A stretch of 64,000 nt of DNA from Takakia lepidozioides (GCA_030704615.1 CM060732.1:79360001-79424000); one strand, 5' to 3'; shown: positions 195-49,449, counted from the first letter of the stretch. The notes: generated from the letters alone by a model not told the origin. Program-made: numbers and translations.

Positions 195-1394
195 TTACAT
201 TGACGGCATGCTGCGGAGCACCAATCCTTCCATTGTCAGCCCTGGGCCAATGCCGATCAGCAATCCCCACTCCTTGCCCTCTCCTGTTGTTGATGCACCT
301 GCCTTCAGTGACCGAGTGCGAATATTATCGAGCACAAACAACACACATGCGCTGCCCATGTTGCCGTAGTTTGCAAGAGTGTCTCGGCTCGCCCCTAACT
401 TCTCTGGCGACAAACCCAATTGGTTCTCTATTTGGTTGAGGATCGCAACACCTCCCGGGTGTACCGCCCAGAACATGTCATTACACTCTGTGGAATCTGC
501 CCATGCTCTTGCTTCGGTCACAAACTCGTCGATGCTCGTTGACACCAGCTTGGGGATATCTGGCGTCAGGTGGTAGTACATGCCAGCCTCCATAAAGTGT
601 CCGTCAATCGCTCCTTCACTGTTTGGCACATTCATCTCACCGGCCCATTGGATTTCAAACAACGGTCGCTCCACTTCGGGGATTAGATCACATCCCACGA
701 TCACTGCTCCTGCACCGTCTCCAAACAATCCTTGTCCTACTAATCCGTCTAGATATTCCTCGCTGGGTGCTCGGAAGAAGCTAGCGGTCACTTCGCTGCT
801 GATTACCAGCACGCGGGCACCCTTGTTGTTCTCGGCAAGGTCCTTGGCAACTCTCAGTGCAGCAGCCCCTCCCCAGCAACCTGTCTGGTACATCATCACC
901 CGTCTCACCTTTGGGGAAAGTCCCAAGGATTTTGCGACAATGAGATCAACCCCGGGCATATTCACCACACTAGTGGTAGTCACGACGATATGGGTAATCT
1001 CTGACTTGGAGCGGCCCCACTCTTTGATCACCTTCTCGGCTGCCTCCTTGGCCAGCTTTGGCACCCACTCAATCAGTATGTTGTGACGCACATTGAGGGA
1101 GTCATCGAGGTAGGTGCCCAAAACGGGGTACTCTTCGATCAATTCCTTTGTCATAACCATGTGACGTTTGTTGATTTGCATCTTATCACAGATGCGCTTG
1201 AACTTGGCTTTGAGGGCGGTCTTGTGATTGCAGTTGGTGGCATCGAAGTAGTAGTCAGCGTAGGTGCTCTGCTCATGCACTGTCGGAGGATTCGCTGTTC
1301 CGATGGCCATCACCGTAGCAGGCCCCTCCGCTCGTGGCTGCGCTCTAGTGCGGCCGTAACTCTGCCCTCCATGGACTTGCCCATTTGACGCCAT
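195..1394 (-). CDS. Type III polyketide synthase (CHS superfamily), copy 1, intronless, 399 aa
   Basis: Uninterrupted ORF with the Cys-His-Asn triad ([18 protein letters not shown]), [19 protein letters not shown] and C-terminal GIGPGLT. Confidence 0.97.
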   Translation of the reverse strand: MASNGQVHGGQSYGRTRAQPRAEGPATVMAIGTANPPTVHEQSTYADYYFDATNCNHKTALKAKFKRICDKMQINKRHMVMTKELIEEYPVLGTYLDDSLNVRHNILIEWVPKLAKEAAEKVIKEWGRSKSEITHIVVTTTSVVNMPGVDLIVAKSLGLSPKVRRVMMYQTGCWGGAAALRVAKDLAENNKGARVLVISSEVTASFFRAPSEEYLDGLVGQGLFGDGAGAVIVGCDLIPEVERPLFEIQWAGEMNVPNSEGAIDGHFMEAGMYYHLTPDIPKLVSTSIDEFVTEARAWADSTECNDMFWAVHPGGVAILNQIENQLGLSPEKLGASRDTLANYGNMGSACVLFVLDNIRTRSLKAGASTTGEGKEWGLLIGIGPGLTMEGLVLRSMPSM

Positions 1395-1739
1395 TGCACC
1401 TGCGGTGTCTTCTGGACCTGATTATAGATTGAGCTCTGCCTTGACTGGGCTAATAAGCAGATGGGTAATATCACCAGCTAAGAAATTTACACCTCCAAGG
1501 TATGTCAAAGATTATCCCGTTCAGCTCCGGCTTCTTAAAGCTTACAATGACGAAGATGGAGATAATTGTGTACAGCGATGGATGAGTATCACCAGCTAGA
1601 TGTGGGAGCTCCAAGGCATATAGTTCGAATATGAGATCTCAGGCTGTCCAGAATTTAGAGAGCTTGTGTATTGCCAACTCGAGTCTAAAGCTCTGAGACT
1701 CCCTGAAGAAGATGGATGGAGTAGAAACCCGGCAGGACA

Positions 1740-2185
1740 ACTATATATAAGTGTGCGTGTATGCACATGGGTGCGTGTGAGTGCGCGTGTAGACCCCAGG
1801 GATTGTGGGTCTGCGCTGCGCGTGCTGATTTGACCGATTACTGTTGGGCGACTTACTGGGCAGGCCACTCAAATTTGACTGTGCCTTACTGTTGGCCTCT
1901 GATCAATTTGCAGGCAGTGCAAAGTTCGCTCGGACCGCCAACCTTTCGGATATCGAGGAGCCCAGGGACCCAGGGCTCCCCGGGATCCAGGACCCTCATC
2001 TCTTGGAGGCAATTGGGAGGGAACTTTCCAGTATTCGAATTGGGGGATTTCTGTTAAAAACAACAAATCCAGGTTTGCACAGCGTGGGATGAGAGCATGA
2101 GTAAGTTGACTGACAGAGGCTGCGCGGGCGCAGACAAGCAAATGCAATATGTATGAATTGCGGTGCAGTCTCTGCTTGACTGGGT
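1740..2185 (-). promoter_or_regulatory. Promoter of PKS copy 1: TATA box, CGCG box, clustered W-boxes
   Basis: TATATA at ~1742-1749, GCGCGTG at ~1818, TTGAC(C/T) at ~1830, ~1875, ~2105 and ~2177. The same motif block recurs upstream of copies 2 and 3. Confidence 0.55.
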
Positions 2186-4689: not shown

Positions 4690-4926
4690 TGTTTCCATTA
4701 CCACTAACAATGCATCTAAGTCTAAGTGCATCCCATGTGTATCCAAAGACCCTTATGTTTCTGAGATGTAGGGTAGCCTGTGCCGTTGGCATGAAGAATT
4801 GAAATGTAGGCCCAAGTGCAATCTCCCATGTAGAGGCCCAAATGCAACCTCTAGTGTCCAATGTCATCTAAGTCCAAGCACAATCTCCTATGCATCAAGA
4901 GACCCTGCAGTTTGGGAGATCTCCAC
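4690..4926. repeat. Left part of an unclassified interspersed repeat interrupted by the MULE
   Basis: Internal repeats CCAAGTGCA(A/T)TC(T/C)CC and GACCCTGCAGTTTGGGAGATCTCC continue at 17604-18430. An uninterrupted version of the target sequence lies at ~18001-18040. Confidence 0.6.
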
Positions 4927-5285
4927 GCCTCTCATTTTTAAATAATTGGGAGTTTATGTCGCGCGTGTGGGACAGGGCGCGCACGCCCGCGGGGTCGCCC
5001 TCCCCCGCCCCGCCAACCCCCACCTGCCAGGCGCGCACCACGGTCGGTAGCCCCGCAGCCACCCGCGGCCCCCGCCCGCCCGCCCTCGCCGTTGGGTCCG
5101 CCCGCCATCGGGTCCCCAGTGGGTCTGCCCTTGCTGGGGTTTGCCCAAGCTCGGTCTGCGAGGTCTGCCCGCAGACCACCCCAGACCGGCACAACAGACC
5201 CAGACGCACCCCAGATGATGTGCCGCCCATCTCACCGTGATGCCGCGTTGCTATCGTAGCCACCCGGATTTAGGGCATGGCAGCC
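4927..5285 (+). repeat. Left terminal inverted repeat of the MULE (GC-rich)
   Basis: Reverse-complement match to ~17236-17594, e.g. GGGAGTTTATGTC, GGGTCCCCAGTGGGTCTGCCCTTGCTGGGG, CCGGATTTAGGGCATG. Confidence 0.9.
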
Positions 5286-5511
5286 GCCGCAAATCGTGGG
5301 CGAAGACTGTTTCATCGATCTTTTCCTCCCTCTGGTCTGTTCCTGCCAACGCGTTTCCGTCCTGCCAAGAACGTGCGTGCTGTCGTCCTTCGCTTCCACT
5401 TTTCCAGGTCGTATTGCAGGTGCTTTCGAGTGCGTGAAGGGGTACTGCAGTGTATATGGTAGCGGCTGTCGATGCCCAACCAAAAAGCTTTCTTATACGT
5501 CCACTGCGACA

Positions 5512-8357
5512 ATGTCTTCAAACACCAAAAGATGGGTCATTTTCCTGCAAAGACCTTTACTGGAAGAACGAGAGTCGCTATGGATACATGGGCTCTCAAG
5601 TGCGGGTCCGCACGGCCTGTATTCCCTGGCAAAGAGTGCCCGACTTTGTACTTGGAGAGGAGAGTAGAAACGGGTGTTCCACCCAATTTTACATAAATGT
5701 GCATGTTAACACGAAGCCCGGACCGCGAAGAGCTCCAAGAGCTAACACATATCTAACCTCTGTCATGTCTGCACCATATTCCCACACTGCCTCTTTGTTC
5801 ATGCCCTGTGCTTGTGCTTGCCGGACATGTACATGCATGATATGTAGATAGGGTTTAGGTTGTCTTACATGCTTGTAGAACTCCATGGGTGTCGATGACA
5901 TACTCCGGTGTCGATGACATACGACCCTGTCCAGGTATCAGTGTTGCTATGGACCAGAGGACAAGCGCACCAACAATTTGACTATCACGGATCCTAAAGT
6001 CAAGCGAGGAGGTCCGGACGTTGGGGCTGGAAGAAGTAATCCTCACAAAGGTCCAAGACGAAAGAAAAACCAATACGGCGAGTCTTACAAGCATGGGTGT
6101 CTCTGTTGTTTCAAAGTCTCGCAATGTTATCTTGCTCCAGACATTGGGGTCATCACATATTATAACAACTAGAACACCTGGATGTGTCCGGAAAACCCTC
6201 TCATGGCGGATATGCTGAGTTCCAGTTCAGCCGATATGCTTATGCTCCACATATTAGCGAGGAGCTCAAAAAGTGGATCATGGAATGCTTGTCTCGAGGC
6301 TTGAGTGTCGCCCAAGTCATGATTGAACACAACGAGCATGTCATGCAGAACAGTGGCTTGGGAGACGCATGGACACGCGACGACTTTCTCCTCGAGCAAG
6401 ATGTCCGAAATCTCGCTGAAAAACGAGCCCGACAGACCTTCAAAAAACACGCTGATGACGCACAATCCGTGCGTATGTGGAAAGATCAAAACCCGGACTC
6501 GGTCTTCTTCTACCAGGAGGAATCATTGGCACCCACATTTCAACATTTTGATGGAGATTTGACCTTCACCATTGGGATTTAGACTCCTTGGCAGCGGCAG
6601 AAGATGTTGGACTTGGGCCATGCGCGCATCGTAGCTTGTGACGCTACATTTGGAACTAACCATCACAAGGTCTACCATGGACCTCTCCACGGGCTTTTGC
6701 TAGCATGATAGCATACTACAATGGTCTCCCACTCTTGTGGTGCATTGCTTATTCATCCTCAATCCCGATAGACCTAACTGTTGTAGACCTTGTCCCAGTA
6801 CACCCTGTTCCAGCAGACCTTCCACTGCACTCTGTTTTAGGGCAGACCCTTTTGCGTGTTCACCCTGTTACAGTAGACCCTGTGCGTGTTCACAAAGTTG
6901 CAGTACACCATGTGCGTGTTCACCAAGTTGCAATACACCATGTGTGTTTTCACCCTATTGCAGTAGACCTTGTGCCTGTCGGTACGACACTGGTCTGCTA
7001 ATTACAAATTGTTATTTCATGCAGTTCCCCTTGTACACGTTGATGGTGTTCGACCAATGGCTGAACGGAATTCCGGTTGCATACATTTTGTCAGCACACA
7101 ATCGAACATCAGACCTTATCCCGTGGATGCTAGCATTGCGTGATGCCCTCCTTCAGGAAAAACCCAACTGGCGGCCAAATGTCTTCATTGTCGACGACGC
7201 TGCTGCAGAAATCAATGCAATCCGGTATGCCACATCTCAATCTGCCCTATGGTCTGCTGTATGGTCCGCTGCAAGGTCTGCCATGTCTGGTCTGGTATGC
7301 CACATCTCATTCTGCCCTATGGTCCGCTTCAGGGTCTGCTATATGGTCTGCCCTATATGGTCTGCCCTGTTTAATCTCATGCTTGTGGCAGTGCTGAATA
7401 CGAATGCCTGGTTCAGGCACTTCTGACTTTGTGGCCGCATGTAGGTCTGTTTTCACAGGAGTATGCATTTTCCTTTGCCTTTGGCATGTACGGACGGCCT
7501 GGGTCAAGCAATCATGCCAGAAAATCAGTGATCCGGGAACATCCTCGAAACTATTGGCAGATATGGGCGACCTTATGTACTGCAGAGGTGGACCGCAGAA
7601 AGAAGATGAAGCTGTGAAATGGGTTAAGAAAAAATTGAAGGCAATGAAAAAGAAATATCCGTCTGGTCAGTTGTTCCTCCACTACATTCATGTGTACTGG
7701 GTTCCCAAAATCGCTATGTGGTGTACTGTTGCCCGCAACATTCCACATGCAAGCCAAGATACTAATGCGAGCATCGAGGCATACCACGGAAACTTAAAGG
7801 CGAGACTTAATATGGGCAAAGCCAAAATGACCGGTCGAAGAGCCGATTGCCTCATATGGGAGTTGACTGGGCGTATACTGGTCCACTACTGGTACAACAT
7901 TCATCTGAAGATGCATGGGTTTATTCGCAACGATAAACAGGAAAAACACATTTCCAGTGCAATATGTGTAGCCCATGACATACCTCTTTCACGTGTGACT
8001 TTGCTTACAGTGCCTGGGCAGCTTGCTTACGTCATCAGCTCCTCCGATCTGAATACAACGTACACCGTGTTCAATCCAGAGTCGCAGTGGGCCTGCTGCA
8101 CCTGCCCGTGGGCGCTGAAAGGCAATCTGTGCAAGCACCGGGTTCGGGTCATAAAGTTGCTAAAACCAGACCTGCAAGACGGTCTCATTGTCCGGACATG
8201 TGGTTCCCACTTCGGTATTGTTCACGGTGGGTTGGAGAATTTGGACGAACATGACGACATGGCAACATGCGACTTCGAAAGCGGTAACATGCGTGCAAGC
8301 GCAACCCCGAACATGGCAGAGTCATTGCTCACGGCAGACCTGTTGGAAGCTATTTAG
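5512..8357 (+). pseudogene. MULE transposase with SWIM zinc finger, spliced, with premature stops
   Basis: Motifs IPWQRVPDFVLGEE, YGPED, TRDDFL, DAQSVRMW, GI*TPWQ, DATFGTN, PLYTLMVFD, FIVDDA, LCLWHV, TNASIEAYH and SWIM CTCPWALKGNLCKH. In-frame TAG at ~6170 and ~6580. Confidence 0.88.
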
Positions 8358-9727
8358 AAACGGGAGATAACCGACCTGCTTGACCTTGTACACAACGACG
8401 CATACCTTATACACCATTGCTTGTCTGCGGGTGCGTGTTTGCCGAGGGCAGATGCAGGACATCCTCGTCAAAAAAGCTTCCGGCATGTTACACCCGGCTG
8501 CAGCACGAGCGTTCAATTGTGTAAAAGACAACAACAACATGTCATTGAAGAGGAAAAAAGATTTTGTGGAACATTTTCAAGCTCGGCGAAAAATGAAACT
8601 AAATGGGGGGAAACGTGTGTCTGCCCTTCCTCCTGTTAGCCATATTTACTCGGCTCTGAGGCGGGTGTCTCATCGTCCAGAACTGAGAAAGATGGATCAA
8701 TCTAACTAAGGAAAGGACCTGCAGTTGTCCAATGCGGTAGATCAATTCTCACCTGCAGTAGACCAGATCGGCAGACCACCTGCAGTAGACCAGTTCGACA
8801 GACCGTTATCGCATACCACCTGAAGTAGACCAATTCGGCAGACCATAATCGGACACCACCTGCAGTAGACCAGATCGGCAGACCATGATAGTACACCACC
8901 TGCAGTAGACCAACACTGACTTGTAATAGACCAATGCGGCAGAGCATCTGCGACTCCCTTAATGTGCTTTTTAAAGGTTTGATGAAGGAGACCATGAAGT
9001 CGAAAAATGAGCCAAAGTGAACCAGTAAACGAATGTAATAGAGTAATGAAGCAAGCATAGTTCAATGAAGCAGACCAAAGACAATACACTCAACTAACGA
9101 TGGGACTGACTTGTGCCCCATATTTAGCCGACCACCGAATTTAGTATACCACTATGTCACGGAGCAGACCAGCAACCGTGGTCCAAACTCAGTCCACTGG
9201 AGGTAGCAGACCAATAACATTAATTCAGTAGCAGACCACGTCGAGGAGAACTGCATATATCAAGAGATCAATAACATCGGACCAGCAAAACGTGGATCAC
9301 TACTCAATACAAAACGTAGTAGTAGAGTAGACCACGACAACAGACTCATGAAATGTTCCACAGACCATATGAAGCAGACCAATACAGTACAGGGGTAGCC
9401 CAAGACAATACACTCGACTAACGATAGGACTGACCTGTGCCACCGAATTTGGTATACCACTATTTCATAGAGGAGACCAACAACCGTGGTCCAAATTAAG
9501 TCCACTCCGTGGAAATAGCAGACCAATCACTTCAGAAGCAGACCACGGCCAGGAGTACAGCATACATCGGTTCACAAACAGACCACGTGGAGCACTACTC
9601 AATACAAAACATCGAGCAGAAATGTTTAGTAGTAGACCACGACAACAGACTAATGAAATGTTCCACAAAAGTGTACATCATATATAAAATCGAACAAACC
9701 TGCACCACAGACCACATGAGTGAATTT

Positions 9728-10644
9728 TCATTTATTGCCAGGCCTAGATGAAATAACCCGGACTTCGGAAGAGTCTGACACGTCCGAGATCTTCCTAGAT
9801 GACAACTGTCTTTCTACAACTACATTCTCCATAGTCATGAGTGCTTTCAAAATGTACTCAACACACTTTAGGCGTTGCCTGCAAACATAGCGGAATGTAA
9901 ACCACTTTGAGGTAAACGACTTTCCTCTCTCTCCAAGTCTTTTGCCACGATCGCCCTTCAACCAGTCGTAGAACCCCTCGATAAAGGACATGACGTAAAA
10001 GCCACATTCCCAAGAGAAGGGTTGTTGTGGCACTTCAGGGACATGAAAATTGAATCCAGTGGCCTCGTCCCACGACGCAGTGTGCGGCTCCAAGCCGAGA
10101 CATGCTCCATACACATTTCGAACCCATGGCAATATCTCCACGGGTTTGTGCATCTCCTTGATTGAGTTCAGATGAGTGAACACGCGGAGCACCCGGTCAA
10201 TAATCACCAAACTCCAATGAGACCTGCCACAACGCAGGGCGCATCAGCACAAGGGAACAGCTGCAAATCAAAATGGCAGACCCATTGAGCAGACTGGTAG
10301 ACCTGGGCACACCAATGTTGCAGACCAGTGATGGTGGACCAATTATAAAGGGCAGAGAAACAGTGGTACTCACGAATGCAGAGCACTTACCCATCAACTA
10401 TTGGTACCAGTATGTACTTGCAGGTCTTCAGGTCCTTCCCCATACGATGCACTGTCAATCCGTGCTCTACCTGCGAGCGAACCCGTTCCTGACCTGCACT
10501 CCAGTGAATCTTCACTACACTCCAAACCCACGTCGGCAAAATAGCAACATCATTATATGTCTTGACATCCAGATCCTTCTGATAAAACCTACACCACAAC
10601 TCAAGCAATCGGTCTGTAACCTCGGATTCCTGTTTCTCTAGCAA
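9728..10644 (-). CDS. Ulp1/peptidase C48-like (SUMO protease) domain exons carried by the MULE
   Basis: KYILVPIVDG, then an intron, then SHWSLVIID (His, Asp) and VPQQPFSWECGFYV (Gln, catalytic Cys). Upstream exons probably extend to ~12700 or beyond. Confidence 0.8.
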
Positions 10645-12473
10645 TTTGAGGTCCTCGGTGGAAATACTGCACTCAAACTGTGGGTCGTTTTAAAAAAAGT
10701 ACAACATTGCTTTTCCCTCAGAGATATGTGCGTTGAAAGTGGAGCCAAATCGGGCAGTGAACCTGCACAAACTCGGGAAAACCCTTTAAGAACCGGGCTG
10801 GCGGACCCAAAAGGACCAAACCTACAACGGATACGGTTCCAGACCCAAGGACCAGACCAACGGAGCAGGCCAATGGAGCGGACAAACGACAGCCACATCT
10901 AACCTAGCAGACCCATGAAGTAGACCCATATAACCTTTTTGCTGCAGACCCATAGACTTGGTGTGTTCAGAGAATCGCAAGCAGACCAACGACACTTACT
11001 TTTGTTTGTTACGCAGCTCCGCGACTTCGCTCTCCACTTCCAAGCAGACCTTCCGGTCAGCACTCATGTATACTCCGGACTTCGGTTTTTTTGCAACGCC
11101 TTTTGGGGGGGAAATTATTTTTACCCTCGGGTCTGCCACGCCATCTGGTATGCGCTTCTTCCCAGCTCTATTTGGTGAAGTAGGTTCCTCCAACTTCTTT
11201 TCCAATGCAACAGCCGCCTCCTTCATACCTTCCCGGAGCTGGCTAGCTCGGCTTCGCAACAAAATTTTGTCCTGGGGTTTACTAACACTTTGTGGTCCCG
11301 TTCTAGACGCTTCCTGCACTCCATGGGTCGAAGTGGCCCCTACGGTGGGGGTTATCACTACTGGTACACCCTTTGTGCTTGACCGCATGTTGAGCACCTG
11401 CGATGGACCACGAGCTGGGACCTCAGACGCCACAACCTTCACACGAATATCAGACAACAGAACATCAGCAATGACCACCCAAATGCACTGGGAAAAAAAA
11501 TGGACTACAAAAATACAATGGAATCAGACCTTTGTGGGCGCTGTGGGTGTCTGCAATTGCACCACTCCTGTGGCAGGTACATCTTCGACTACAGTGACTG
11601 GTTCCACAGAATGAGAAGGGACAGAAACATGTGCATGTGTTTCGACAAGGTCTGATGAATGGTCTGCTATGGGTGGAGCACCCTATCAATGGATTGGTCT
11701 ATTGCCAGTAGTGGGTCTACAGACGAGTCGGGGTCCACAAAAGTAAGCGGCAAAACGGCCAAAGATGCATCCTCATCTGCAGTAGACCCTGCCTCTAATA
11801 GATGGGGAAGGTCACCGACCAAACTGACACAGTCATAGTCCATTGTTGCAATTGCAGAATTGGTCTGTACTATGGATAAATGAGCACTGACGCCTTCCCG
11901 GTTCTATTCAGGCAGTGCCGTGTCAGAAGGTCTGGTGGCAAGGGTAAGATCCACTACCATTCTCTGCTTCTCAGCAGATGTTGCAGTGGGGTGGAAAGGA
12001 ATTGCTCCTCTCATTTTCGGCAACTCGTATGTGCCAGGGAGGATGGGCGTTGCTTCCTGGGTTATCGCCAGGTCTCCAGATGGTCTGATGTCCTGCACTG
12101 GCAAGGTCTGCTGATGTTGGAATGGTGAGGTGTTGGCGTCCATACATGCGTCGCGATCCACTTCTGCTGTGCATTTGTCAAGCAATGTACCAGCCAGGGT
12201 GTCCTCCGGCAAGGTCTGATCTTCTCTCCTCTGCTCCAGCAAGGTCTGATCAGGTCTGCACTGGTCGGGAAATGTCTGCTCTGAGATGGTGTGGTCTGGT
12301 ATCCTCTGGTCTTTTGGGGTATGGTCTGTTGTGCACTCGGATCGTCTGGAGTCCTGCGCTGTGGTCTGGTCTGCTGTGGTATGGTCTTCTGTGGTCTGCT
12401 CTTGTCTTGTTTGGTGTGGGGTGGTCTGGTCTGATTTGGTGTGGTCTGGTTGTGTCTGGTCTTGTCGGGTCTG

Positions 12474-15400
12474 CTATGGAGTGCTCTGGCTTGCACTGGT
12501 CTGCTCAAGTATGATTTCCACTGCAGCGGTCTGCTTCATCAAGGTGATGGGTGCCCGCTGATCCGGAAAGGTCTGCCCATGTCCAATCTGGAAGTTGTTA
12601 TCTGCAAAGGTCTGCATAACCAAGGTCTCCCCGGTAATTTCGGGTAAGGTGTGCAATGCCTCCACGAAAGTCTGTTTTCGCAACGAAAAGTTTTTGTCAC
12701 CCACATTCTCTAGCTTGGGATCACTGGCAATCCAGTCGGGGGTCTGCTGTTCCTTGTTCTCCGTAATCTAGTCGGGGGTTTGCTGGTTGGCATGTCGGTA
12801 CTTGGGATTTGGCTGGAAAGGGTATGCTCGCTCCACAGTCTGCTCGCTGCGGGTCTCCTGGGTCTCCATGGGAGTTGGGTTCTGTGTGTCTGCTGTTGTA
12901 CGAACTCCAATGAGCCTACACTTAACGGGTGACTCGACTCCAGTATGGCCACGGAAGGCTCGTAGAAGCTGCCTTTCACCATTGGCGTACTGGTCAAGAG
13001 CATTCCGAACAAGCTCGTCCTCTGATCATACTCTGCAACATGTCACAAACACGTCAAAAACAAAGCACTCATCCTTGGTCTGCTAACAAACGGAAGAATA
13101 CATGGGGGTTTGATTCACATGGGGCTCTGTTGGTTATCATGGTTCATAAAGTCTGCTAGAAGGTCCTCGTTCGTGGTCAACGTCAAGGTCTGTTTAAAAG
13201 GTCTGTTCAAAAGGTTTGTGTAAAAGGTCTGTTTAAAAGGTCGGTGTAAAAGGTCTGTTAACGAGGTCTGTTAGGTCTGATGACATACCATGATCTAGGA
13301 CTGTGGTCCACAGCCCAATATCTTTTATAAGCCAATCCATGAAGGCCTCATCAAGCTCTCCTAGAGCTGCAACATGGTCCTCTGCTGGAAACCCGCTCCA
13401 AAGCACTTAGAAAGCATGTCGTTTGTTGAATGCAATGTCGAAAACCGCACGCTCCTGCACAGTCACAAACCACATCATGGCGTCTTGCGTGATACTTTCC
13501 CGAGCCTCTTCGCTTCCGTGCAGCAGGTCCATCCGCAGGTTGTGAAGGTCTTTTTTTAATTTGGTGTAAGACCTGAAATTGCCAAATTGCATCCATTGAC
13601 GGCGGAGGAAACAATCTGCCATCTCCTCAAAAGCAGTCTCTGTCAAGCTCGCTAAGTGCTTCGGACGAACACCAAATATTGGGTGGGCGATGGCCATGTG
13701 CCTTATCTCTAGTGGGCGTGGGTCGTGCATGAGAAAGAGCTGCGCAATAAGCGGTGGCTCGGTCTCATCTGCCAGAATCGCCACTCCATACTCACGGGCT
13801 TTGTCCAAAACACGAGTCGCCTCCTCTGCCGTGAACTCCATTGAGGAGTGTTGCGGAGCAAAGGTCCACTGGGAGGCGAAGATGCGGTGAAGCTCATTGT
13901 ACTAGTCCAGATGCCGATTGCTTTCCCCACAACGAAACTTCGGAAAAGTGGGGTCATTCTCATCAGTTGCAGACCGCTGTGGAGGACGCCATGGTCTGTC
14001 AAATGTGAAAACAGTTCGACCACGCAATGTGGTCTGCTGAGGGTCTACTGAAGAGGTACGAAGGTCCGCTGGAGGACGGGTCACGGAAGAAAGGTCCACT
14101 GAGCCGGGTCTGCTAGTCTGACTGGCGCTGTCAAAAGCCTTTACAGCAGACGGAGGGAGGCCTGCTGCGTGGCCAGTGGTACCATCTTGAATTGATGCAA
14201 TGGCATCAGCCGACTGTGGATACAGACTCAGGATGTAGTCACGAATATCACGGACCTCATTCCGGACAAGTGTATTTTCCAAGGGAGGACCGTTCAACCT
14301 GTACTTCCAGATTTGCAAAGCCCTGTACATTCGATTGTCTTGCACATTCGCCTCCTGAAAACAAACAGCAATATTGGCCTTCACATTAGAGCAGTAGACC
14401 ATAGACTAGTAGATTGGGCCTGACAGCAGACCAGTAGACCATACACCAGTAGACCATTACAGTAGACTAGTAGAGCATAGTAGTAGACCATAGACGTGGA
14501 CCCATGCAGCAGACCACAGCCATGGCAGTAGTGCGCCTTTCAAAGCAACTCCAGTACCATGTTGCGCAAAGCAGACCCAAAACAGTAGACGGTTCGCTGT
14601 AGACCACATATATAATAATAATAATAAAACACTATGATTTTCAACAGGGGAAAGTAGTCGCACGGTTCTGGACGTATAGAGCAAACCACAGCCAGAACAA
14701 GTAATGCAGTACCATGTACAGAATAGCAGACCCAGAACAGTAGACCGACAGCAGCAGGCCACACATACAACAATGGAGCATAGCATATCACTAATTGCAA
14801 TCGAAAGACTCAAATACGGTAGGACGGCAAAAAGAGTGGTTGAAGTACCTAGAGGCCGTTGTAGTCTTCATCCCTTGGGTGTGATTGTGCCTCCACCCAC
14901 TTCTTCTCGGCTGTGTCAATGGTCTGCTGTATCTGCCCTGATCTCACATAAGCATACAAAAAAGAGAAAAAATCTGGATCTGATTCATCTGGGTACTGAT
15001 CTGGCAGAAGACCGTGGGAAAGTAGGTACAATGTGCAAGGGCGGACAGGGGTGCCCGTTACATCTCCATGAGCGTCAGTCAAGGACTGTTGTTTCTTGGT
15101 TTGCTTGTTGGGTCTGATATGTGGTGGGCGTCGTGGGTCTGTTTGAGGGTGTGATTCCTCCATGGGGATGTCCGAGTCAAGGATTATGTCATGTACCGGC
15201 GGGGTGTACCCAATGGGGTCGTTCACCAAGTACGGTCTCACAAGTAGTCCCGGCCGCTCTGTCGACATGTCCTAAATATGATCCTCCTCTTCATGAGAGT
15301 CTTCCTCACTTGAGTCATCCCCACTCGACAACAAAGTTGAAACGACAGCCTGTGGTCTGCTGGTGTTGGTCTGCTGGGACAGACCTGGTTGCAATTCTTT

Positions 15401-15931
15401 GCTACTCACTCTCATATCCCGTGGTATGCCAGTACTGGTACTGCCAGATTTGTGACTTTTGCGGTCTACATTTTTTTTAGCTCCATCACTGAGCTTCCTT
15501 TTCTTCACTGGCACAATGAGGCCGGGGCTCAGCAGGGCGGCTTCAGTGTAATAACGCTGCCGCACTTCCTCAGCAGACCGAGCGACGGCATGCGCACCCC
15601 TACACTTTGCAGTGATTTCTTTTGCGGCCTTAGACAAACTTGGCTTGGGCCAAGGCTTGAAGTTCTCGGGGACCATACCTTTGCATCCTCCATCAAGGGC
15701 ATGGCGGTTTAGAGTCTCTTTGTTCTTGACAATATCGGGGCAAAAGGGGCACTGAAACCGATCCTTTGGCCAGTTCTCTTTCTCCTTCGCTACGCGCAAG
15801 TCCAAAAATGCTTCTACTATTTTAGCATCGTACTTAGTTGGCTCATACTAGTACATTCTCTTGGCTTTGTGGCGAGGGGCATGCACATATTCCACCCAAT
15901 CGGCTCCGCCCTTTGGGCAAGCTTCTTCCAT
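12474..15931 (-). pseudogene. Multi-exon MULE cargo gene with an N-terminal CxxC-x12-H-x5-C zinc finger; function unknown; may be fused to the Ulp1 exons
   Basis: ATG at 15931 opens a frame that runs through TAG stops into ORFs 15272-15805 (QCPFCPDIVKNKETLNRHALDGGC) and 14849-15268. Further coding-like blocks lie at 13902-14360 and 13407-13841. Confidence 0.6.
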
Positions 15932-17594: not shown

Positions 17595-17603
17595 GATCTC
17601 CAC

Positions 17604-19938: not shown

Positions 19939-20086
19939 CTGTAAGCAGCTTTTGCTGCAATGAGTTCTCAAAAGTTTCATGAATCTGCGTCAAGCTGCTG
20001 AAGACCGAACACAGGTACTTCGTGCCTGCTTCTCTGGGCTCAGCTTATATTTCAACGATGACATTGTGGCGGTGGGGAAAAGTGAT

Positions 20087-36800: not shown

Positions 36801-39800
36801 GGTGTGTATAATACAATTAAAACATCATATGATTATATGAATGACTAATGGGTGTATTGGTTAACAGGTAATGAACTATAACTCTTATAGTAAAGAGGTT
36901 GCAGGTTCAAACTCCTCTAAGTACAATCAAATGGATAAGATGACCCTAGGGTTAGTAGGTGAGTTAGGGATAGCACGTGGTGCCCTAGATGGATTGCCAC
37001 GTGGTTTTTTCATTATTATAAAATGCATTATGCCACGTGGCACAATGCGGTGTGACGCGGCGTTTGACATATGTTTTAGTTTTTTAGTTTTTTAATTTAA
37101 TTTAATTTTTTAAATCAATTGCGCCTCGCCACGTGGCGCGGCAGCGGCGGCTACAGTATGGTATATATGACTGCAGTGAGAGATATCACTTGGTTCATAT
37201 GACTGTAGTCATCCGGACCGTACCATCCTGTACTCATTGTATTGACTTGGTTTGCACGACTTACAGTCATAGAAGTCATATGTACCGTTTATGACTGCAG
37301 AATAGTCATAAATACCGCGATCTGTTGTAGTGTGATCCAAGGTCTCATTAATCCTGGGTAATGGGTAGGCATCCTTTTTGGTGATGTCATTCAGCTTCCT
37401 GAAGTCAACACAGAAACGAGTGGTACCATCTTTCTTACCAACCAGGACAATCGGACTGGCCCAAGGAGAAACTGAAGGCTTAACCACGCCAGCATCAAGC
37501 ATTTTCTGTACCTCTTCTTGAATTATTGCACGTTCCTTGACACTCTCATGGTAAGCAAATTGTTTAATAGGAGCCCCTTCAGTGACAATGTCATGTTGGA
37601 GAATATGAGTGCGTCCTAGATCAGTGGATCCCAAACTGAAAACATCTAGATTCTTTGCAATAAGCATTTCCACTTTCCTCCTTTGTCTAGAGGAGAGAGT
37701 TGTGCCCAACTTGATTTCAGATAAGAGGGCCGCCTTACCTTCTGGGCTGAGATCAAGGACAGGTGGTGGAGCAACTGCAGCAAAGGCAGAAACCTCATCT
37801 AAGAGGCCATGTTGGATGCCGATGGCCTCAAGTCCAAAGCCAGCGTGCACCTCTTGTATCGCAGCAATGGGCAGAGCAGTATTGCGAGCCAGAACCTGCC
37901 CCTTTTTAATAGTCACAGGGAAGCGCTCAAGATTAGCAATCAGGATCTTGACTTCCTGCCTATATCCTCTATCCAGAACACCAGTGGCCACCAGGCAGTG
38001 CTTAAGGGCATTCAATCTCCTCCAACCTTCAACTTCTAGGAAATGAGAAGCTGGACACAAGAAAGCCAGACCAGACTTGACCACCTTCTGAGTCAAGGCA
38101 AGGATGGTGATGTTGAGAGGTGCACGAATTAGAGTAGAATTCTTTGGAATAGCTATGGGCACCCCTGTCCTATCCCTAGCACCAGGAACATGCCACTGAT
38201 ATAAGAGTTGAAGAATAGGCTGAAACTTGTAGAAATCATTCCAATTGAGGTTGGAGTGAGAGTTCTGTTGTACCTCCTTTACTAGGGCCTGGACTCTGGA
38301 CAAATTGGCTGTAGCAGACCCAGCCTTTATCTTCACTGCTTTCAAAAGAACCACTACTTCATGCCCCTCTCCATTGTTAAAGCGAAGGGAGTAGTCTACT
38401 AGGCTGATGGTGGCACCAGCCCCGGTCATCCAGTCAAGGCCTAGAAGGAATTGATCTCCAATGGTGACTATGCAGGTACCTAACGACAACCTCCTTTTTA
38501 TGAATTATGATGGGAACAGTGACTAGTCCTAAGGGCTCATACCTGGATCCATCTGCAATAAGCACCTCAATACCCGTGGCAGAGCATAGTTTAAGACCAA
38601 GAACTCTCACAACACTCAAGGGTATGGCAGCTATAGTGCATCCAGTATCAACCACACAGGGAAAGCTGAGCTCGTGGATATGGCACTGGGCCATGAGGGG
38701 ACTGATCTGCTGGCCAGCAGTCTGCCGACTGAGAGGACAATGCAAAGCTTTGAAATTAGTAGATACAACAGCTTGAATCGGAACAGAAGAAACAGGGTTG
38801 GTAGATGATGGACCTCTTGCCCCCTTCCCAAGAGATCGTGCTAGTTTAAAAGAGGGGAAGAGCCATTAGCTGTCTTCTTGTTCTTGATCAGCTCTGGTAG
38901 CCCTGCTCTGTCTAGACAATGCTTCGTCCAGTGTTCAAAAGACCCACAGATGTAACAGGCAGCACGATTACCTTCATAGGCTTGTCCAGTCTGGGTTCGA
39001 CCTCTATTGTTACGTCTTGTGGTTCCTTGGCTGTGTCGAGGCTGCCATCTCTGTTGATGAGCCTGCATGGCAGCAAACTGAGTGGCCACAGACTCACTAA
39101 GACTTCCCACAGTATTAGCCAACCCCTGAAGAGTAAAATCATCAGCTTTATATGTCTTAGCAGGAGGAACATAGGGTGAGGATGTTGCAAACATGCCAAG
39201 CTCTGAACCCACTGGAGCTTGAAACTTGGCATGATGTTGCATTGATTTGCTGTCAGCCAAGTCTGCCATTTTAAGATTAATTTCTGCTAACATAGTCTTG
39301 TCATCAACAAAATGATGTCGTTGAGCCCAATTCTGAATAGTGGAAGGCAACCCAAGGAGAAAATACCTTTTAACCATACGATCCCTCTCTGCGGGGTCTA
39401 TGATGTTTTCAACAGCAGCAAATTTTAGATCCATGTAATACTTCCACAAGGATTCCCCAGGTTGGTAAGTCCTGGCCGAAAGCTTGGTAAAGCAATCCAG
39501 AGGCCTCTCAGGAGGTTTGAACAAGGTCTTTGCCTATTCCACCAGAGTTGCCCAGTTGAGGCTGGGATCATCCATGACAGCCGCATGCAGTAAGTCACGA
39601 GCTGGTCCCTTCATGCTCATCCTAAAGATCGTCATCTTGAAATTCTCAGGCACTCCATTGACACTAGCAATGACCTCAAACATCTGAAGATATCTATCAA
39701 AGTCTTTTCCCATGGTATATTCTGGGTAAGGTTGAGTGGTCAGCTGGGGAATCAGATGATACGGCAAGCTATGGTTGATATGACCATGGAGGACAGACCC

Positions 39801-42067
39801 ATGAGCAGGGCAACAGGGAACTATGGGAGCAGCATTACCATGCACATATCCAATATTAGATGCAGAATTGTAACTTACATTATTATTGCTGACTGATCAT
39901 GTAGCAGTTGAGGCTGACAGACGTGACGCCACCGTGCCCATGGGAAGAGCAGGTATTGCCACACTTGGCTGAGCAACAGGGTTAGTAGACTGCAAGTGGG
40001 TCTGTGGCATGCCACTCATGGGAAGAGTGGATGCCACTCCCACCGGTTGTGTTGACACAGATCTTATACTGCTAAGAGGGATATTGCTAGCATGCATACC
40101 CACGGACTGGCTAGAGACAAGATGTGGTGGCACCCCAGCTTGGAAGCAGCAGGAAGAGCCCCCACTGATTGGTCAGCTATGGCAGGAGGCAGAGCAGTAG
40201 ACATATTAGAGGGCCCTTGCATCATGACACCCCCACCTTGAACAACACCATGCACGTTCAACACAGGAAGATTGCCCACATGCAGACCCGAATTCATAGG
40301 CAACAAGTTCCCTCCCTCGAGAGTGGGACTAGGGAAATTCACAACAGGCAGCATCCTAGGACTCAAGTTAGCAACCAGGGCCAGCATACTGCTCGTAGTA
40401 GCCCAGACATCCGAACCAGACCCTTCGATCCCGTGGACATGAGTAGGATGAGAGGGCAGAACGTTTAACTCCCGAGCCAGCGTAGGCTCAGTCCGTCTAG
40501 CCACCAAGGCCTCATCACGCCGATCATAGACAGAAAGGCCCTCAAGGGTGGCTATCCCAGACCCCTCATCAACTAATGTAATACCAGTTAGGGACTCTGC
40601 AACTGCTCCCATTGTCCCAACATTCAACAATTCATCATCACTCACCATGAAATTACCTGCCTGCAGGTTGTCCGATCCCTCATTCACTTCTACTATACCT
40701 TCGGCCAGCGGCTCTCCTAAATTATTCATGGACCTCTGTCTTCCGGATCTCAGCCAAGTAGTTCTAGAATCACCTAGCATACAAGAAACGAGGTTGGATT
40801 GGAGGCATAACATTTAAGCAGCAGGGATGTGGAGCATGGGCCGAGCACTTGGCGAGCTGTCTTCCGGAACCCAAGTGGAACAATACACCACCCTCAGCAC
40901 CTTGTGTGATTGTAATTCATAGATCCCCAACGCCAGCCACTCCCAACCATCAGCTCCTTTAAGCCAAAAGCCAACGCGGGTGGTATCGCCCTCTCTCCAG
41001 GTGCGCGAAAGCACAGTCGAGTTTGAACAGTCACTCAGTCTCTCAAACGCGCTTGGGCGAGCCACTTGCTATGAAGCAAAGGACTCCACACCCAGGACCA
41101 CTAGATCAGACAACTGTACTATCAAGGCCCCACCCGTCAAACCATCAATTAACTGTGAATAAGTAGGTGCCAAGGCGCAGGGCCGGAGCTGAAATCGTAG
41201 TGCCCTCAAGATCAAAGCCCCCGTGCCTTGTAACATCAACGACAACCAACTTCGCCCTACCACATCAGGGCCATGTTGAAGCTCTGCACTTCGAACACCA
41301 GAAAGAGGTAGATACAAGCCAACTTCCAACCAGGTCAATTCACGATGGTTCAGAAAACGCGACTTGATCGTCCTGGACAGTAGACGCTCTTTGTTGCATA
41401 GCTCAAATTCGCGCTTAGCAAGCTGTCTGGCCCTGGATATCACCGCACCAGGCTCAAGCAAAGGTCGCGTGAACAGGGCCTCATGATGACTGGTTAGTAC
41501 AGCAAGATCACCTACAACAGCTCTCTCTACACGCTCAAACCAAAGCTGATCTTCGTCACACAACAGATCATCTATTTCCTGTGACAATTCAATGTCTCTC
41601 TCTAATTCTGCTGCTTGCTGCCTACTTTCGAAATATTCAGGGCCTGGATCCACAAAATTGTCAAAGTTATAGTAGTCTGGGTCAAAGCTATCTAGAGAGC
41701 TGTCAGACCTCTCAAACCTTGGCGACCACGCCTCTGCCTCCCCCAGATTATCATAATCACTACCACCAGGAGAACCCAATGAAACAACAAGGGCTGGAAC
41801 GTAAGCAGCAGGCTCAGGAAGAGGCGACGCTGGCAAGGCAACACTGCCAGGCCGCGCGCCGTCGGTAGTGTTAGTAATAACAAGAATGTCAGCAGGGTGA
41901 GAAACAACGGGAGGAGCAACAACAACAACACCAGCAGAATAAGAAGTGCCAACAGGGTCAGTCTCTACACTAGGATCAGCTTTGATAGCAAGTGCCACGC
42001 TAATCTGAAGGAATAGGCTCTCCCCCTCTCTACGAGCTACACAAGACAAGTCACGAACTGTAGCCAT
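33890..42067 (-). pseudogene. gag-pol polyprotein remnants
   Basis: ORF fragments 41069-42067, 40064-41065, 38841-39845, 38434-38745, 37209-38489, 36230-36493, 35588-36214, 34330-34824 and 33935-34381, separated by stops and frameshifts. Confidence 0.9.
36498..37332. mobile_element. Non-autonomous CACTA (EnSpm) element nested in the gypsy RT
   Basis: Termini CACTACAACAGAT..CGCGGTA / TACCGCGATCTGTTGTAGTG, 3-bp TSD TGA (36495-97, 37333-35), subterminal ATGACT/AGTCAT repeats. Removing it restores RT RINETLDQLHGAT. Confidence 0.93.
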
Positions 42068-42260
42068 CCCCTGCGATCACACCCCAACACACATCGTGAG
42101 ACGGCAAAATCACAGCAGCAGGAGAAAATAGGGCAAAGCGAGGAGTCGTCATCGATAACACGCATTAGCGAACCCCTTAGGCAGTAGGACGTAGAGCAGA
42201 TCCCGCGAAAAGACCTAACTGATCCTGACAGTGCGGGCAGGATCCACCACGCCTAGAGTA

Positions 42261-42278
42261 CCCGGCGTCTCTCCACCA
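42261..42278 (-). other. Primer-binding site, probably tRNA-Ala
   Basis: TGGTGGAGAGACGCCGGG directly follows the 5' LTR on the minus strand. Its complement CCCGGCGTCTCTCCACCA resembles tRNA-Ala 3' ends. Confidence 0.65.
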
Positions 42279-42737
42279 TAAAACAAGCCTGAAGCATATA
42301 CTCATTTCCTCTCAAGAAGCGAGGTTGCACAACAAAGGGGCGAGCGGAAAGAGCAAGCAGCGCGCGAGACGAGGATCAAACACACGAATCAGACACTAAG
42401 TAGCTCTCATCCAAAACTTGTACACCCAAATCACATATACACCAACACCCGAGTACACCGCCCTCACCTTGTGTCAGGGCGCCGTCTTTATACAAAAGCC
42501 CTAACCATAGTGGCCTGCCGCGTGGCGAGGCATCATAGGCCAAAGCCCACGATGCTGCCTTGCAGCCTTAGATCTGATGAAAGGCCAAGATCAAGCCACC
42601 AGCCTAAACTAACCCTAACCTAAACATCATTGTAACGGATTAACGGCTTTATACGCCAAAAAAATATACTATGAATGTGTATCGCCGTTTTGGATGAAAC
42701 GGGCTATTTTCAGGCTAAGCAAGTATGGGGCTTTACA
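42279..42737 (-). repeat. 5' LTR
   Basis: Near-identical to 32967-33424. Confidence 0.95.
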
Positions 42738-46332: not shown

Positions 46333-46790
46333 AATTTACATCGATTTGTCCATATACAACCAAGCCATTGTAGATTGTATTTTTGTATCCTTTGCAGTAA
46401 AATATGACACCTCTAAAACCCAAAACACAATATATACTAAACTAGAACAAATCCACCTATATATAACACTAATATTAGTCCATAGATACTAAATGACAGC
46501 TGATATTGTCATTTTCAATTGAAATCTGGATTGTTCTCTAAATTGGCCCCCTTACCTCAAAATTTACATCGATTTATCCATATACAACCAAGCCATTGTA
46601 GATTGTATTTTTGTATTATTTGCAGTAAAATATGACACCTCTAAAACCCAAAACACAATATATACTAAACTAGAACAAATCCACCTATATATAACACTAA
46701 TATTAGTCCATAGATAGTAAATGACAGTTGATATTGTCATTTTCAGTTGAAATCTGGATTGTTATCTAAATTGGGCCCCTTACCTCAAAA
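46333..46790. repeat. Direct tandem duplication of an AT-rich unit of ~228 bp
   Basis: TTTACATCGATTT.TCCATATACAACCAAGCC ... CCCCTTACCTCAAAA occurs twice. Confidence 0.9.
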
Positions 46791-46869: not shown

Positions 46870-47400
46870 TGTCGTGTTCAAAAGTCCATAGCCTTTCGAC
46901 ATTTTATTGGATTGACGATTGGACAATTGATATAGGTAGGTATTGAAGTTAGGAATCCGGTTGGGAGCAGGACCCATAAGTTGGCTGAGTAAACGTCAAC
47001 CAACTATAGCTTTATCATCAATAGAGGCTATCAGAGACCACCAAGGAGTCTGTTTGGCTGAAGCGAATGCTTCAAGAATTGAGTCTTGCAGACGAAAGGG
47101 CGCTTATTCACATTGATAATTAAAGTTGCATTAAGATAGCGCATAATCCTGTTTTTCATGCTAGAACTAAACACACATAAGTCCAATATCATTTTGTTCG
47201 AGAACAATTCTGTTAGGGAACCTAGAGGTCAATTATGTCTCAACTACCGAATTCTACAAAAGCCTTAGGAAGACTCAAGTTTGAGAAGTGCAGATTCGAA
47301 ATAGGAGTTTGCAAGAAGTTAGAGGTCCAAACTAGAATCCTGTAGTTGTGGTTTGAGAGGGAATGTAGAAGTAACAAAGATTTATCAGTAACACACAAAT
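46870..47400 (+). mobile_element. Ty1/copia RNase H remnant with polypurine tract and start of an LTR
   Basis: Degenerate WLSKRQPTIALSS, IAHNPVFHARTKH and YHFVRE, then TTGAGAGGGAA followed by TGTAGAAG at ~47363. Confidence 0.7.
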
Positions 47401-48246
47401 AGAACTCTGTCAACAAGATTTGCTGTAAAATAGTTAGTCATCAATGAAAGAGAACAAGGGGGTAGTTAATGATTAAGTCGGTAGATTTATTAGCACACGG
47501 CATGCACTAAACATATCTAGGTGAGGTAACCCGATATAAGACTGTAAGCCTAAGCCTATGTCTCAGTTCACCGTTCTCGAAGTAGCTGAGTTTTCAACAA
47601 TGCGAGACCCAAGAAATCTTTCTTGATGATGCTGCTGTTGTCAGATAGGATTTGGGCAATCGTCTCTACATTCCTGCTTTGCAACCGGCCAAATACGATG
47701 ACACACCTCACGGCAAAATGGGGGCCCCTGAATTTCTACATGAAGGACAATCAGCATTTTCACGCTGTCGAAAACTGCATGTTCAGTACGATCCATTGAG
47801 CACCTCATCGATGCCTTCAACAAGTAATCCATTGGGTTAGAAAAAGTGTTTGTTGAAAAATCTTGAACTCCATTGGAAGTTTCGTATTTCTGAAGTGGTC
47901 GTCGAGTATCAGTACAAGGACAATCTCTCCTTGGAGAGAGTCACCGAAAAAATTCAATTCTGAGTATAAGAATGGGCTAAGCCAGCAGGCTTCGTCCTTC
48001 CACCCAATCCAGGTGGGCAGTTTGAAGGAATTCTGCTGCCGCTGACAGTATATTCAAATGATCTACTTCAAAGCCCCTTCAAAAGGGCTATGTAGTTTAT
48101 AGTTGCACAGCACCTATATGAACAATGTTGGTTTCAGGTGATTGAGGAGCGCCGAGAAGCACAAGAAACCTACTAGTCTCGCTTCCAGCTCGGAGACCTT
48201 GGCTCAATCATGGTCAGTGGTGGGCAGAGGAAAAATACTATTGAAA

Positions 48247-49449
48247 TTACATGGAAGGCATGCTGCGTAGCACCAATCCTTCCATTGTCAACCCTGGACC
48301 AATGCCGATCAGCAATCCCCATTCCTTGCCCTCTCCTGTTGTTGATGCGCCTGACTTCAGTGACCGATTGCGAACATTATCGAGCACGAACAACACACAT
48401 GCGCTGCCCATGTTGCCGTAGTTTGCAAGAGTGTCTCGGCTCGCCCCTAACTTCTCTGGCGACAAACCCAATTGGTTCTCTATTTGGTTGAGGATCGCAA
48501 CACCTCCCGGGTGTACCGCCCAGAACATGTCATTACACTCTGTGGAATCTGCCCATGCTCTTGCTTCGGTCACAAACTCGTCGATGCTCGTTGACACCAG
48601 CTTGGGGATATCTGGCGTCAGGTGGTAGTACATGCCAGCCTCCATGAAGTGTCCGTCAATCGCTCCTTCACTGTTTGGCACATTCATCTCCCCAGCCCAT
48701 TGGATTTCGAACAACGGTCGCTCCACTTCGGGGATTAGATCACATCCCACGATCACTGCTCCTGCACCGTCTCCAAACAATCCTTGTCCTACTAATCCGT
48801 CTAGATATTCCTCGCTGGGTGCTCGGAAGAAGCTAGCAGTCACTTCGCTGCTGATTACCAGAACGCGGGCACCCTTGTTGTTCTCGGCAAGGTCCTTGGC
48901 AACTCTCAGTGCAGCAGCCCCTCCCCAGCAACCTGTCTGGTACATCATCACCCGTCTCACCTTTGGGGAAAGTCCCAAGGATTTTGCCACAATGAGATCA
49001 ACCCCGGGCATATTCACCACACTAGTGGTAGTCACGACGATATGGGTAATCTCTGACTTGGAGCGGCCCCACTCTTTGATCACCTTCTCGGCTGCCTCCT
49101 TGGCCAGCTTTGGCACCCACTCAATCAGTATGTTGTGACGCACATTGAGGGAGTCATCGAGGTAGGTGCCCAAAACGGGGTACTCTTCGATCAATTCCTT
49201 TGTCATAACCATGTGACGTTTGTTGATTTGCATCTTATCACAGATGCGCTTGAACTTGGCTTTGAGCGCGGTCTTGTGGTTGCAGTTGGTTGCATCGAAG
49301 TAGTAGTCAGCGTAGGTGCTCTGCTCATGCACTGTCGGAGGATTTGCTGTACCAATGGCCATCACAGTGGCCGGCCCCTCTGCTCGCGGCTGCGCCCTTC
49401 GCCCATTACCATAAGCCTCCCCTGCATCGATGTGCCCATTTGATGCCAT
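48247..49449 (-). CDS. Type III polyketide synthase, copy 5, intronless, 400 aa
   Basis: Intact ORF with the MASNG ATG at 49449. The longer ORF call runs through the promoter and is not the true start. Confidence 0.97.

Follow-up and report, generated by a model that had tools for sequence, protein, structure and literature searches.

The 64-kb stretch of Takakia lepidozioides DNA analyzed here (GCA_030704615.1, CM060732.1:79360001-79424000), which we call the window and whose own coordinates are used throughout, carries on its minus strand an array of five genes for type III polyketide synthases (PKSs), numbered copies 1 to 5 by position (Table 1). All five are intact and free of internal stops, and copy 1, the one searched against Pfam, matched both Chal_sti_synt_N (PF00195, 3.4e-94) and Chal_sti_synt_C (PF02797, 1.5e-54) over its full length, which bears out the five-gene array proposed in a preliminary description of this DNA. 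When copy 1 was compared with solved structures, 127 type III PKS chains matched. The best of them was the chalcone synthase (CHS) of Physcomitrium patens (536 bits, gapless over 384 residues); liverwort stilbenecarboxylate synthase 2p0u scored 506 bits and alfalfa CHS2 485 bits, and the benzophenone synthase (BPS) of Garcinia, at 400 bits, ranked 60th. Between copies, identity is 94-97% in DNA and 95-98% in protein, a level of protein identity at which the five do not count as independent observations. Their hypervariable part is the N-terminal tail only, with several substitutions and small indels in codons 6-18; most amino-acid differences fall within the first 18 residues, and the remainder of the protein varies at about 15 positions in total. 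Each synthase gene also contains, at the same relative place, an antisense open reading frame (ORF) of 168 aa on the plus strand (580-1086, 20472-20978, 27980-28486, 31455-31961, and 48632-49138), which most likely arises incidentally from conservation of the coding sequence and is not a gene.

The active site was read in the numbering of alfalfa CHS2, checked on the real chain 1bi5, to which residues 15-396 of copy 1 align at 6-387 without gaps and with a constant offset of nine. We placed V196S and T197F by motif alignment to 1bi5 185-207, L258F, R259M, L263M, T264Y, and F265Y by motif alignment to 250-275, and S338G by motif alignment to 328-350, while the other positions were read from a residue table of the five copies against a 389-aa legume CHS. 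Changed in all five copies are G134V, F165W, V196S, T197F, A213G, L258F, R259M, L263M, T264Y, F265Y, P307V, S338G, and F373I; kept in all five are T132, S133, M137, C164, E192, T194, F215, G216, I254, G256, H303, N336, and P375. The substitutions listed in the preliminary description are thus all real and sit at homologous positions, and the triad, F215, and G256 are retained in every copy, as it had stated. The hallmarks of a type III PKS are present throughout, namely the Cys164-His303-Asn336 triad, the gatekeeper Phe215, and Pro375 of the G-x-G-P-G loop. The residues that define a CHS are not: in place of Thr197, Gly256, Phe265, and Ser338 the five copies have Phe197, Gly256, Tyr265, and Gly338, and in place of a (G/A)FGPG loop they have GIGPG. 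With three of these four positions and the loop changed, the earlier claim that the genes do not encode canonical CHSs stands.

Several of these changes are those of the benzoate-specific enzymes biphenyl synthase (BIS) and BPS, with which the comparison was made through a BIS-like fragment (P0257) and printed PDB alignments rather than full-length proteins. F265Y and S338G occur together in all known benzoate-specific PKSs; Phe192 of MdBIS3 (equivalent to 197) and Met267 of HaBPS (equivalent to 263) each collide with bound naringenin and so close the pocket to the coumaroyl moiety; and with S338G a new pocket appears behind the catalytic Cys, which Thr135 and a G-S-A-C stretch line in BPS (PMC5713876). 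The roles that the preliminary description had assigned to the pocket residues are the ones given in that source. According to the account of Liu et al. (2003) in PMC5713876, a CHS triple mutant, L263M/F265Y/S338G, favors benzoyl-CoA and loses its preference for 4-coumaroyl-CoA. All five window copies have Tyr265 and Gly338, a combination found in only two of 134 representatives of type III PKS diversity, and they carry both plugs at once, the Phe197 of BIS and the Met263 of BPS. In the ranking of the residue-338 motif the two solved BPSs (7cbf and 5uco) came 3rd and 5th with an identical GNMGSAC stretch, and in that of the loop motif Garcinia BPS came 1st and BIS3, with an identical GIGPG, 4th-5th; the printed alignment of BIS3 gives Phe192, Tyr260, and Gly335. 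What the preliminary description had stated of these enzymes was likewise found in them: Phe197, Tyr265, Gly338, and GIGPG on Malus BIS3, GNMGSAC in both solved BPSs (which also have Met263 and Tyr265), and at position 256 an Ala in BIS and BPS where the window copies have Gly. Because BIS and BPS rank low around 197 and 256-265, the likeness is one of single residues and not of segments.

To place the genes among their relatives, we searched a collection of 5.8 billion sequences, in which an identical protein was absent. The nearest relatives were Sphagnum proteins of 81% and 78% identity, and a profile of the relatives separated a distinct group, at 683-825 bits, from ordinary single-domain CHSs, at 600 bits or less. 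Cluster look-up named four Sphagnum paralogue groups in it, alongside several unnamed transcriptome and metagenome sequences; members include CY35_03G075900, CY35_04G100000, and BDL97_04G096700 of Sphagnum, XP_024370350.1 / PHYPA_004541 of P. patens, and KC19_4G270000 of Ceratodon purpureus. The P. patens gene may be PpCHS9, reportedly called a probable non-CHS by Koduri et al. (2010). The residues that define the group are W165, F197, M259, M263, Y264, Y265, V/A307, and I373, of which W165, F197, M263, Y264, Y265, and I373 are common to all members, Ceratodon having them in part only. In the named Sphagnum, P. patens, and Ceratodon members, residue 196 is Ile, Thr, or Val and residue 258 Leu or Met. 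Residue 338 is nearly always Ala across the group, the exceptions including Ser in Ceratodon and Gln in a single paralogue of Sphagnum.

When a maximum-likelihood tree was rooted on bacterial-type enzymes, this moss clade, with its Sphagnum, Physcomitrium, and Ceratodon members, was monophyletic (support 99/96) and the five window genes formed a single branch inside it (100/99). It fell outside a grouping of moss, liverwort, lycophyte, and seed-plant CHSs, a node that is weak (61/92), and an approximately unbiased (AU) test did not reject the clade as sister of ordinary moss CHS (p 0.56); it is sister either to all land-plant CHSs or to moss CHS. As to the moss CHS-like backbone proposed earlier, whole-protein scores favor moss CHS (536 bits) over BPS (400 bits), while nesting within moss CHS is not shown by the tree. 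Canonical CHSs with all residues intact occur in the same mosses (P0019 in Sphagnum, P0024 in Ceratodon). As judged from the sequences compared, the enzyme type is an old, moss-wide clade beside CHS, within which the window genes are, by their Gly338, those furthest toward a benzoate-synthase pocket. Moreover, the BIS-like sequence P0257 groups within the seed-plant clade (100/100), and well-supported branches part it from the moss clade that holds the window genes, which speaks against descent from the angiosperm BIS and BPS; the resemblance is therefore convergent. The preliminary description was right to suppose an independently evolved pocket but not in crediting it to this array, since most of its signature belongs to the clade as a whole.

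A metagenome-only cluster (P0014), 78% identical to the window genes, shares their Ser196 and Phe258; among its members, whose mutual identity is 90% or more, residue 338 is Gly once, Ala six times, and Thr once. We rejected the idea that it is their orthologue, an idea that preceded the tree: the tree places it elsewhere and a joint clade gave an AU p of 0.0055, two of the three P0014 rows being partial proteins. The combination Ser196/Phe258/Gly338 either arose twice or is ancestral and was lost several times. A clade member on a metagenomic moss contig (L004, 9318-10990) has the canonical CHS intron, about 480 nt long, after the conserved Cys65; its pocket has Ile258, Leu263, and Thr338. 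This pocket differs yet again, and the pocket is evidently evolving fast within the clade.

Over the conserved core, comparisons between copies gave a dS of 0.09-0.19 and a dN/dS of 0.04-0.15; the five copies are under strong purifying selection. Since the pattern of substitutions is kept in relatives of 58-81% identity and dN/dS is this low, it is not a product of chance. For transcription, contigs of public runs were aligned to 2,400 nt around copy 1. Two runs from different studies, X5 and X6, which are of transcriptome-assembly size and whose RNA nature is a guess on record, gave contigs that span copy 1 without joints, that is, without a signal of an intron. At the upstream edge these contigs cover 1251-1717 (X5) and 1314-1703 (X6), with zero depth at 1761-2400 in both; at the downstream edge they cover 1-296 and 1-335, respectively, with no differences, and both extend past the window start. 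Contigs of other paralogues part from the window sequence exactly at 195. In run X1 the summed contig depth was 5,000-100,000 over the coding region of copy 1 against about 4 beyond 2100, a depth not usable for ranking genes by expression. These observations fit an unspliced, strongly expressed transcript of copy 1 with a leader of about 320 nt, and the five genes are probably all transcribed, the contig data being those of copy 1. In a run labeled as a different organism (X8), two contigs of depth 3-4 were identical to copy 1 at 243-399 and 621-869; they could be contamination, mislabeling, or a very close relative.

As for the history of the array, self-blastn of the window showed that similarity between copies generally runs from the stop codon to near the start codon, with exceptions in two flanks, one common to copies 2 and 3 and the other to copies 3 and 4 (Table 1). 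The first belongs to a match of 20059-21843 with 27565-29367 (92.9% identical), and around the second 26820-28750 matches 30284-32225 (90.4%) and 26056-26773 matches 29456-30163 (80.5%). Informative sites split copies 1 and 5 from copies 2, 3, and 4 in 17 cases and group copies 3 and 4 inside the second set in 6; a further 13 are in conflict, mostly near the ends of the coding sequence (<110 and >1000), and because they cluster near both ends we infer some gene conversion among the copies. Separate retrocopying of each gene was considered and rejected, as the copies stand in tandem, have no common sequence in the untranslated regions (UTRs), and are alike only from near the ATG to the stop codon. 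A single loss of the intron before amplification, with some gene conversion later, fits the sequences better; the loss would have taken place in this lineage before the array was amplified, since the metagenomic relative retains the canonical CHS intron.

The spaces between the copies are occupied by transposable elements. The Mutator-like element holds weak MULE transposase and SWIM zinc-finger ORFs (6737-8357) and an Ulp1-like fragment (9728-10210), and the Ty3/gypsy element holds ORFs for integrase, RNase H, and a dUTPase domain (37209-38489). The region of three consecutive ORFs at 22046-25126 is G-rich on the plus strand, with a GC skew of +0.15 to +0.18. Upstream of copy 5 there is a tandemly repeated 230-bp unit (46333-46562 and 46561-46790, 96.5% identical) within an AT-rich stretch (GC 0.37). 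Beyond the array lie genes for HMG-CoA reductase and Lon protease, with no evident functional link to the synthases. Among the window ORFs of at least 150 aa there was no CoA ligase, P450, methyltransferase, or prenyltransferase, a search that genes split by introns may escape.

Table 1. Features of the Takakia lepidozioides window, ordered by position (window coordinates).
Feature	Position	Strand	Remarks
Probable 3′ UTR of copy 1	1-194, continuing beyond window start	minus	X5 and X6 contigs
Type III PKS copy 1, 399 aa	195-1394	minus	ATG-to-stop ORF, intronless, intact
Probable 5′ UTR of copy 1	1395-1717	minus	Transcribed stretch upstream of ATG, at the ends of X5 and X6 contigs
Mutator-like transposon between copies 1 and 2	~4927-17594		Inverted ends 4926-5205 / 17308-17595, 91% identical
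Type III PKS copy 2, 401 aa	20087-21292	minus	ATG-to-stop ORF, intronless, intact
Upstream flank of copy 2	21293-21843	minus	Common to copy 3 (28801-29367), ~550 nt; remnant of duplicated unit
Three consecutive ORFs (232, 271, 376 aa)	22046-25126	minus	No Pfam match; resemble non-LTR retrotransposon reverse transcriptase
Downstream flank of copy 3	26056-27594	minus	Common to copy 4 (29456-31069), ~800-1500 nt; remnant of duplicated unit
Type III PKS copy 3, 401 aa	27595-28800	minus	Intronless, intact; ATG at 28798-28800 within a longer mechanical ORF
Type III PKS copy 4, 397 aa	31070-32263	minus	ATG-to-stop ORF, intronless, intact
Ty3/gypsy retrotransposon between copies 4 and 5	32967-42737		Long terminal repeats (LTRs) 32967-33424 / 42279-42737, 97.6% identical
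Type III PKS copy 5, 400 aa	48247-49449	minus	ATG-to-stop ORF, intronless, intact
HMG-CoA reductase gene beyond array	exons ~51411-53340	minus (strand of array)	
Lon protease gene beyond array	56021-62436	minus (strand of array)	Lon_C at 56.0-57.4 kb, AAA at ~62 kb

Since the triad, Phe215, and the residues of the CoA tunnel are intact, we would expect these enzymes to load an acyl-CoA starter on Cys164 and to extend it with malonyl-CoA by decarboxylative Claisen condensation. The site of the coumaroyl ring in CHS would be plugged twice, by Phe197 in the manner of BIS and by Met263 in the manner of BPS, with a Tyr as the gate residue 265, and Gly338, as in BIS and BPS, would make room behind the catalytic Cys for an extra pocket, by which elongation and cyclization are steered. 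p-Coumaroyl-CoA would then be rejected in the binding mode of CHS, a small starter would prime the enzyme, and a non-flavonoid polyketide would be made, with a benzoyl- or hydroxybenzoyl-type starter as the single most likely candidate. The shape of the pocket, the starter, and the product are here deduced from residues, and the parts of this proposal differ in strength. That the five genes encode active enzymes other than CHS that exclude p-coumaroyl-CoA seems very probable to us; that their physiological starter is a benzoate-type acid is a tentative suggestion, which we hold to be possible rather than probable. The proposal as a whole, that is, non-chalcone synthases using a small starter with the benzoyl type as leading candidate, we would place slightly short of an even balance, as a compromise between these two judgments.

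A number of observations weigh against this proposal, the case for benzoate above all. The G256A of BIS and BPS and the G216A of BIS are lacking, Gly being retained at both positions, so that next to the CoA tunnel the cavity still resembles that of CHS; W165, V134, Y264, and V307 have no counterpart in BIS or BPS. F265Y occurs also in the acetyl-primed orcinol synthase of Rhododendron, and the quinolone synthase of Citrus, with its Tyr197, Met263, and Gly338, uses N-methylanthraniloyl-CoA. Residue 338 is labile: Ala338 prevails in the clade, and Gly, Ala, and Thr alternate among close relatives, which weakens the case for Gly338 alone as the mark of a new function, and this residue may not be critical. 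An AlphaFold2 model built from a 14-sequence alignment of the clade was poor (mean pLDDT 53.8), and the RNA status of the runs rests on the recorded guess. In the literature on moss or Sphagnum type III PKSs or on GIGPG we found no characterization of any clade member, and we know of no report of benzophenones, biphenyls, or xanthones from mosses. The pocket for a small aromatic starter envisaged in the preliminary description is thus borne out in so far as the residues match those of benzoate-specific synthases, and is called into question by the CHS-like G256 and G216 and by the orcinol synthase with the same F265Y; a benzoate starter for the window enzymes is plausible.

The main rival is a small aliphatic starter (acetyl-, malonyl-, or short branched acyl-CoA) leading to a pyrone, a resorcinol/orsellinate-type product, or an acylphloroglucinol, after the models of 2-pyrone, orcinol, and valerophenone synthase. 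Bulky residues at 197 and 263 would shrink the starter pocket in general and not for benzoate in particular, the orcinol synthase just mentioned shows that F265Y is compatible with an acetyl starter, and both the unchanged G256 and the prevalence in the clade of Ala338 over the Gly typical of BIS and BPS point the same way. 2-Pyrone synthase, however, has G256L and S338I, large residues that shrink the cavity, and the acetyl-specific orcinol synthase likewise narrows it with a large residue (S338W), while here residue 338 has become smaller; in addition, the window enzymes have the exact trio that, as far as PMC5713876 describes the mutant, shifts CHS toward benzoyl-CoA. We regard an aliphatic starter as somewhat less probable than a benzoate-type one, and as a serious candidate still. 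Mosses are rich in phenylpropanoid-derived phenolics, and a cinnamoyl-, (dihydro)coumaroyl-, or caffeoyl-CoA starter could be accepted in another binding mode, with fewer extensions or an altered cyclization giving products of styrylpyrone, benzalacetone, bibenzyl, or stilbenecarboxylate type. The higher score of liverwort stilbenecarboxylate synthase 2p0u over alfalfa CHS would agree with this, as would the conserved Thr132, Ser133, Glu192, and Thr194 of the pocket. Nevertheless, Phe197 and Met263, each of which clashes with the coumaroyl part of naringenin in BIS3 or BPS, are both present, and the CHS triple mutant, as summarized in that same source, loses its preference for 4-coumaroyl-CoA, so that we consider phenylpropanoid starters improbable.

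A long-chain acyl starter would be accommodated if Gly/Ala338 opened a fatty-acyl tunnel, with alkylpyrones or alkylresorcinols of the cuticle or spore wall as products, as for moss ORS/ASCL. The small residue at 338 does enlarge the space behind Cys164, and bryophytes possess type III PKSs of this kind, whose bryophyte and charophyte ORS members are marked by Gln218, Val/Ala277, and Ala286 in PpORS numbering (PMC11316218). Mapped to CHS 197, 256, and 265 by a constant offset of 21, itself an inferred correspondence, these positions are Phe, Gly, and Tyr in the window enzymes, and we rejected their identity with ORS. Moreover, the cavity floor is occupied by Phe197, at a position where enzymes that form a tunnel have a small residue (T197G), and the clade is distinct from the bacterial-type outgroup, its place being among CHS-like enzymes; a long-chain starter thus appears distinctly improbable. 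Least probable is that these are ordinary CHSs, extra copies for the flavonoid pathway whose substitutions are neutral variation of the lineage. The database annotation of the relatives as "chalcone synthase" and the Physcomitrium CHS as best solved match would suit such a view, but it has to face the altered GFGPG loop and the replacement of three among the four pocket residues that define a CHS, the presence of canonical CHSs in the same mosses (P0019 and P0024), the distinctness of the clade (99/96), and the retention of the substitutions under purifying selection since the deepest moss splits.

Type III PKSs are a textbook case of how a few pocket residues redirect plant chemistry, and to our knowledge benzoate-specific members come only from a few flowering-plant families. 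In the window genes a separate moss lineage has arrived at the same residue solution, with both plugs, Tyr as the gate, and Gly338, and a slightly milder version with Ala338 is conserved in mosses under purifying selection. A pocket so conserved points to a class of moss metabolites without an assigned enzyme, or to a class of enzymes without an assigned metabolite, and it offers a natural test of which benzoate-determining residues suffice. As P. patens has a single clear member of the clade and is amenable to knockout, the question is directly testable, and the intronless window genes can be expressed straight from genomic DNA. If a benzoate-primed moss PKS were confirmed, it would imply undescribed bryophyte polyketides derived from benzoyl or hydroxybenzoyl starters (of benzophenone, biphenyl, phenylpyrone, or acetophenone type), which the five-gene array of this genome, with its fully BIS/BPS-like Gly338 pocket, would produce in quantity. 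The clade members span a deep-branching moss, Sphagnum, and Physcomitrium, so such an activity would have originated early in moss history; that mosses did evolve a benzoate-primed type III PKS at that time, independently of flowering plants, we consider rather unlikely. Should the starter prove to be aliphatic or phenylpropanoid, the result would be a corrective to inferring starter preference from these four residues.

Finally, we compared the window enzymes with characterized systems and with their own relatives. The closest solved structure, P. patens CHS (PDB 6dx7 and 9jl6), shares the fold, the triad, and the dimer-forming Met137, but it is a member of the clade of ordinary moss CHSs and has the canonical T197, L263, F265, S338, and GFGPG. 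Of the other members of the clade of the window genes, a metagenomic one differs in gene structure, since it retains the CHS intron that they lack. The quinolone synthase of Citrus microcarpa (PDB 3wd8) resembles the window enzymes in its aromatic residue 197 (Tyr), Met263, and Gly338, by which the coumaroyl pocket is eliminated; it differs in Ala256 and in Met132 and Met194, which close the extra pocket and in whose place the window enzymes have Thr132 and Thr194. Malus x domestica BIS3 (PDB 5w8q) shares Phe197, which plugs its coumaroyl pocket, as well as Tyr265, Gly338, and GIGPG, yet it has Ala132/216/256, Phe263, Pro307, and G-A-P-T after 338 where the window enzymes have Thr132, Gly216, Gly256, Met263, and Val307, and it lies outside the best 60 whole-protein PDB matches of copy 1. 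The BPSs of Hypericum androsaemum (5uco) and Garcinia mangostana (7cbf) have in common with them Met263, Tyr265, Gly338, GNMGSAC, and Thr132 (Thr135 in BPS) lining the extra pocket, and differ in Thr197, in Ala256, in the GLGPG of Garcinia, in their angiosperm lineage, and in a score of 400 bits against 536 for moss CHS. A functional precedent is the Hypericum CHS triple mutant, as reported in PMC5713876, whose L263M/F265Y/S338G occurs naturally in all five window copies; the mutant has an otherwise canonical background, to which the window enzymes add T197F, F165W, G134V, T264Y, R259M, P307V, and F373I.

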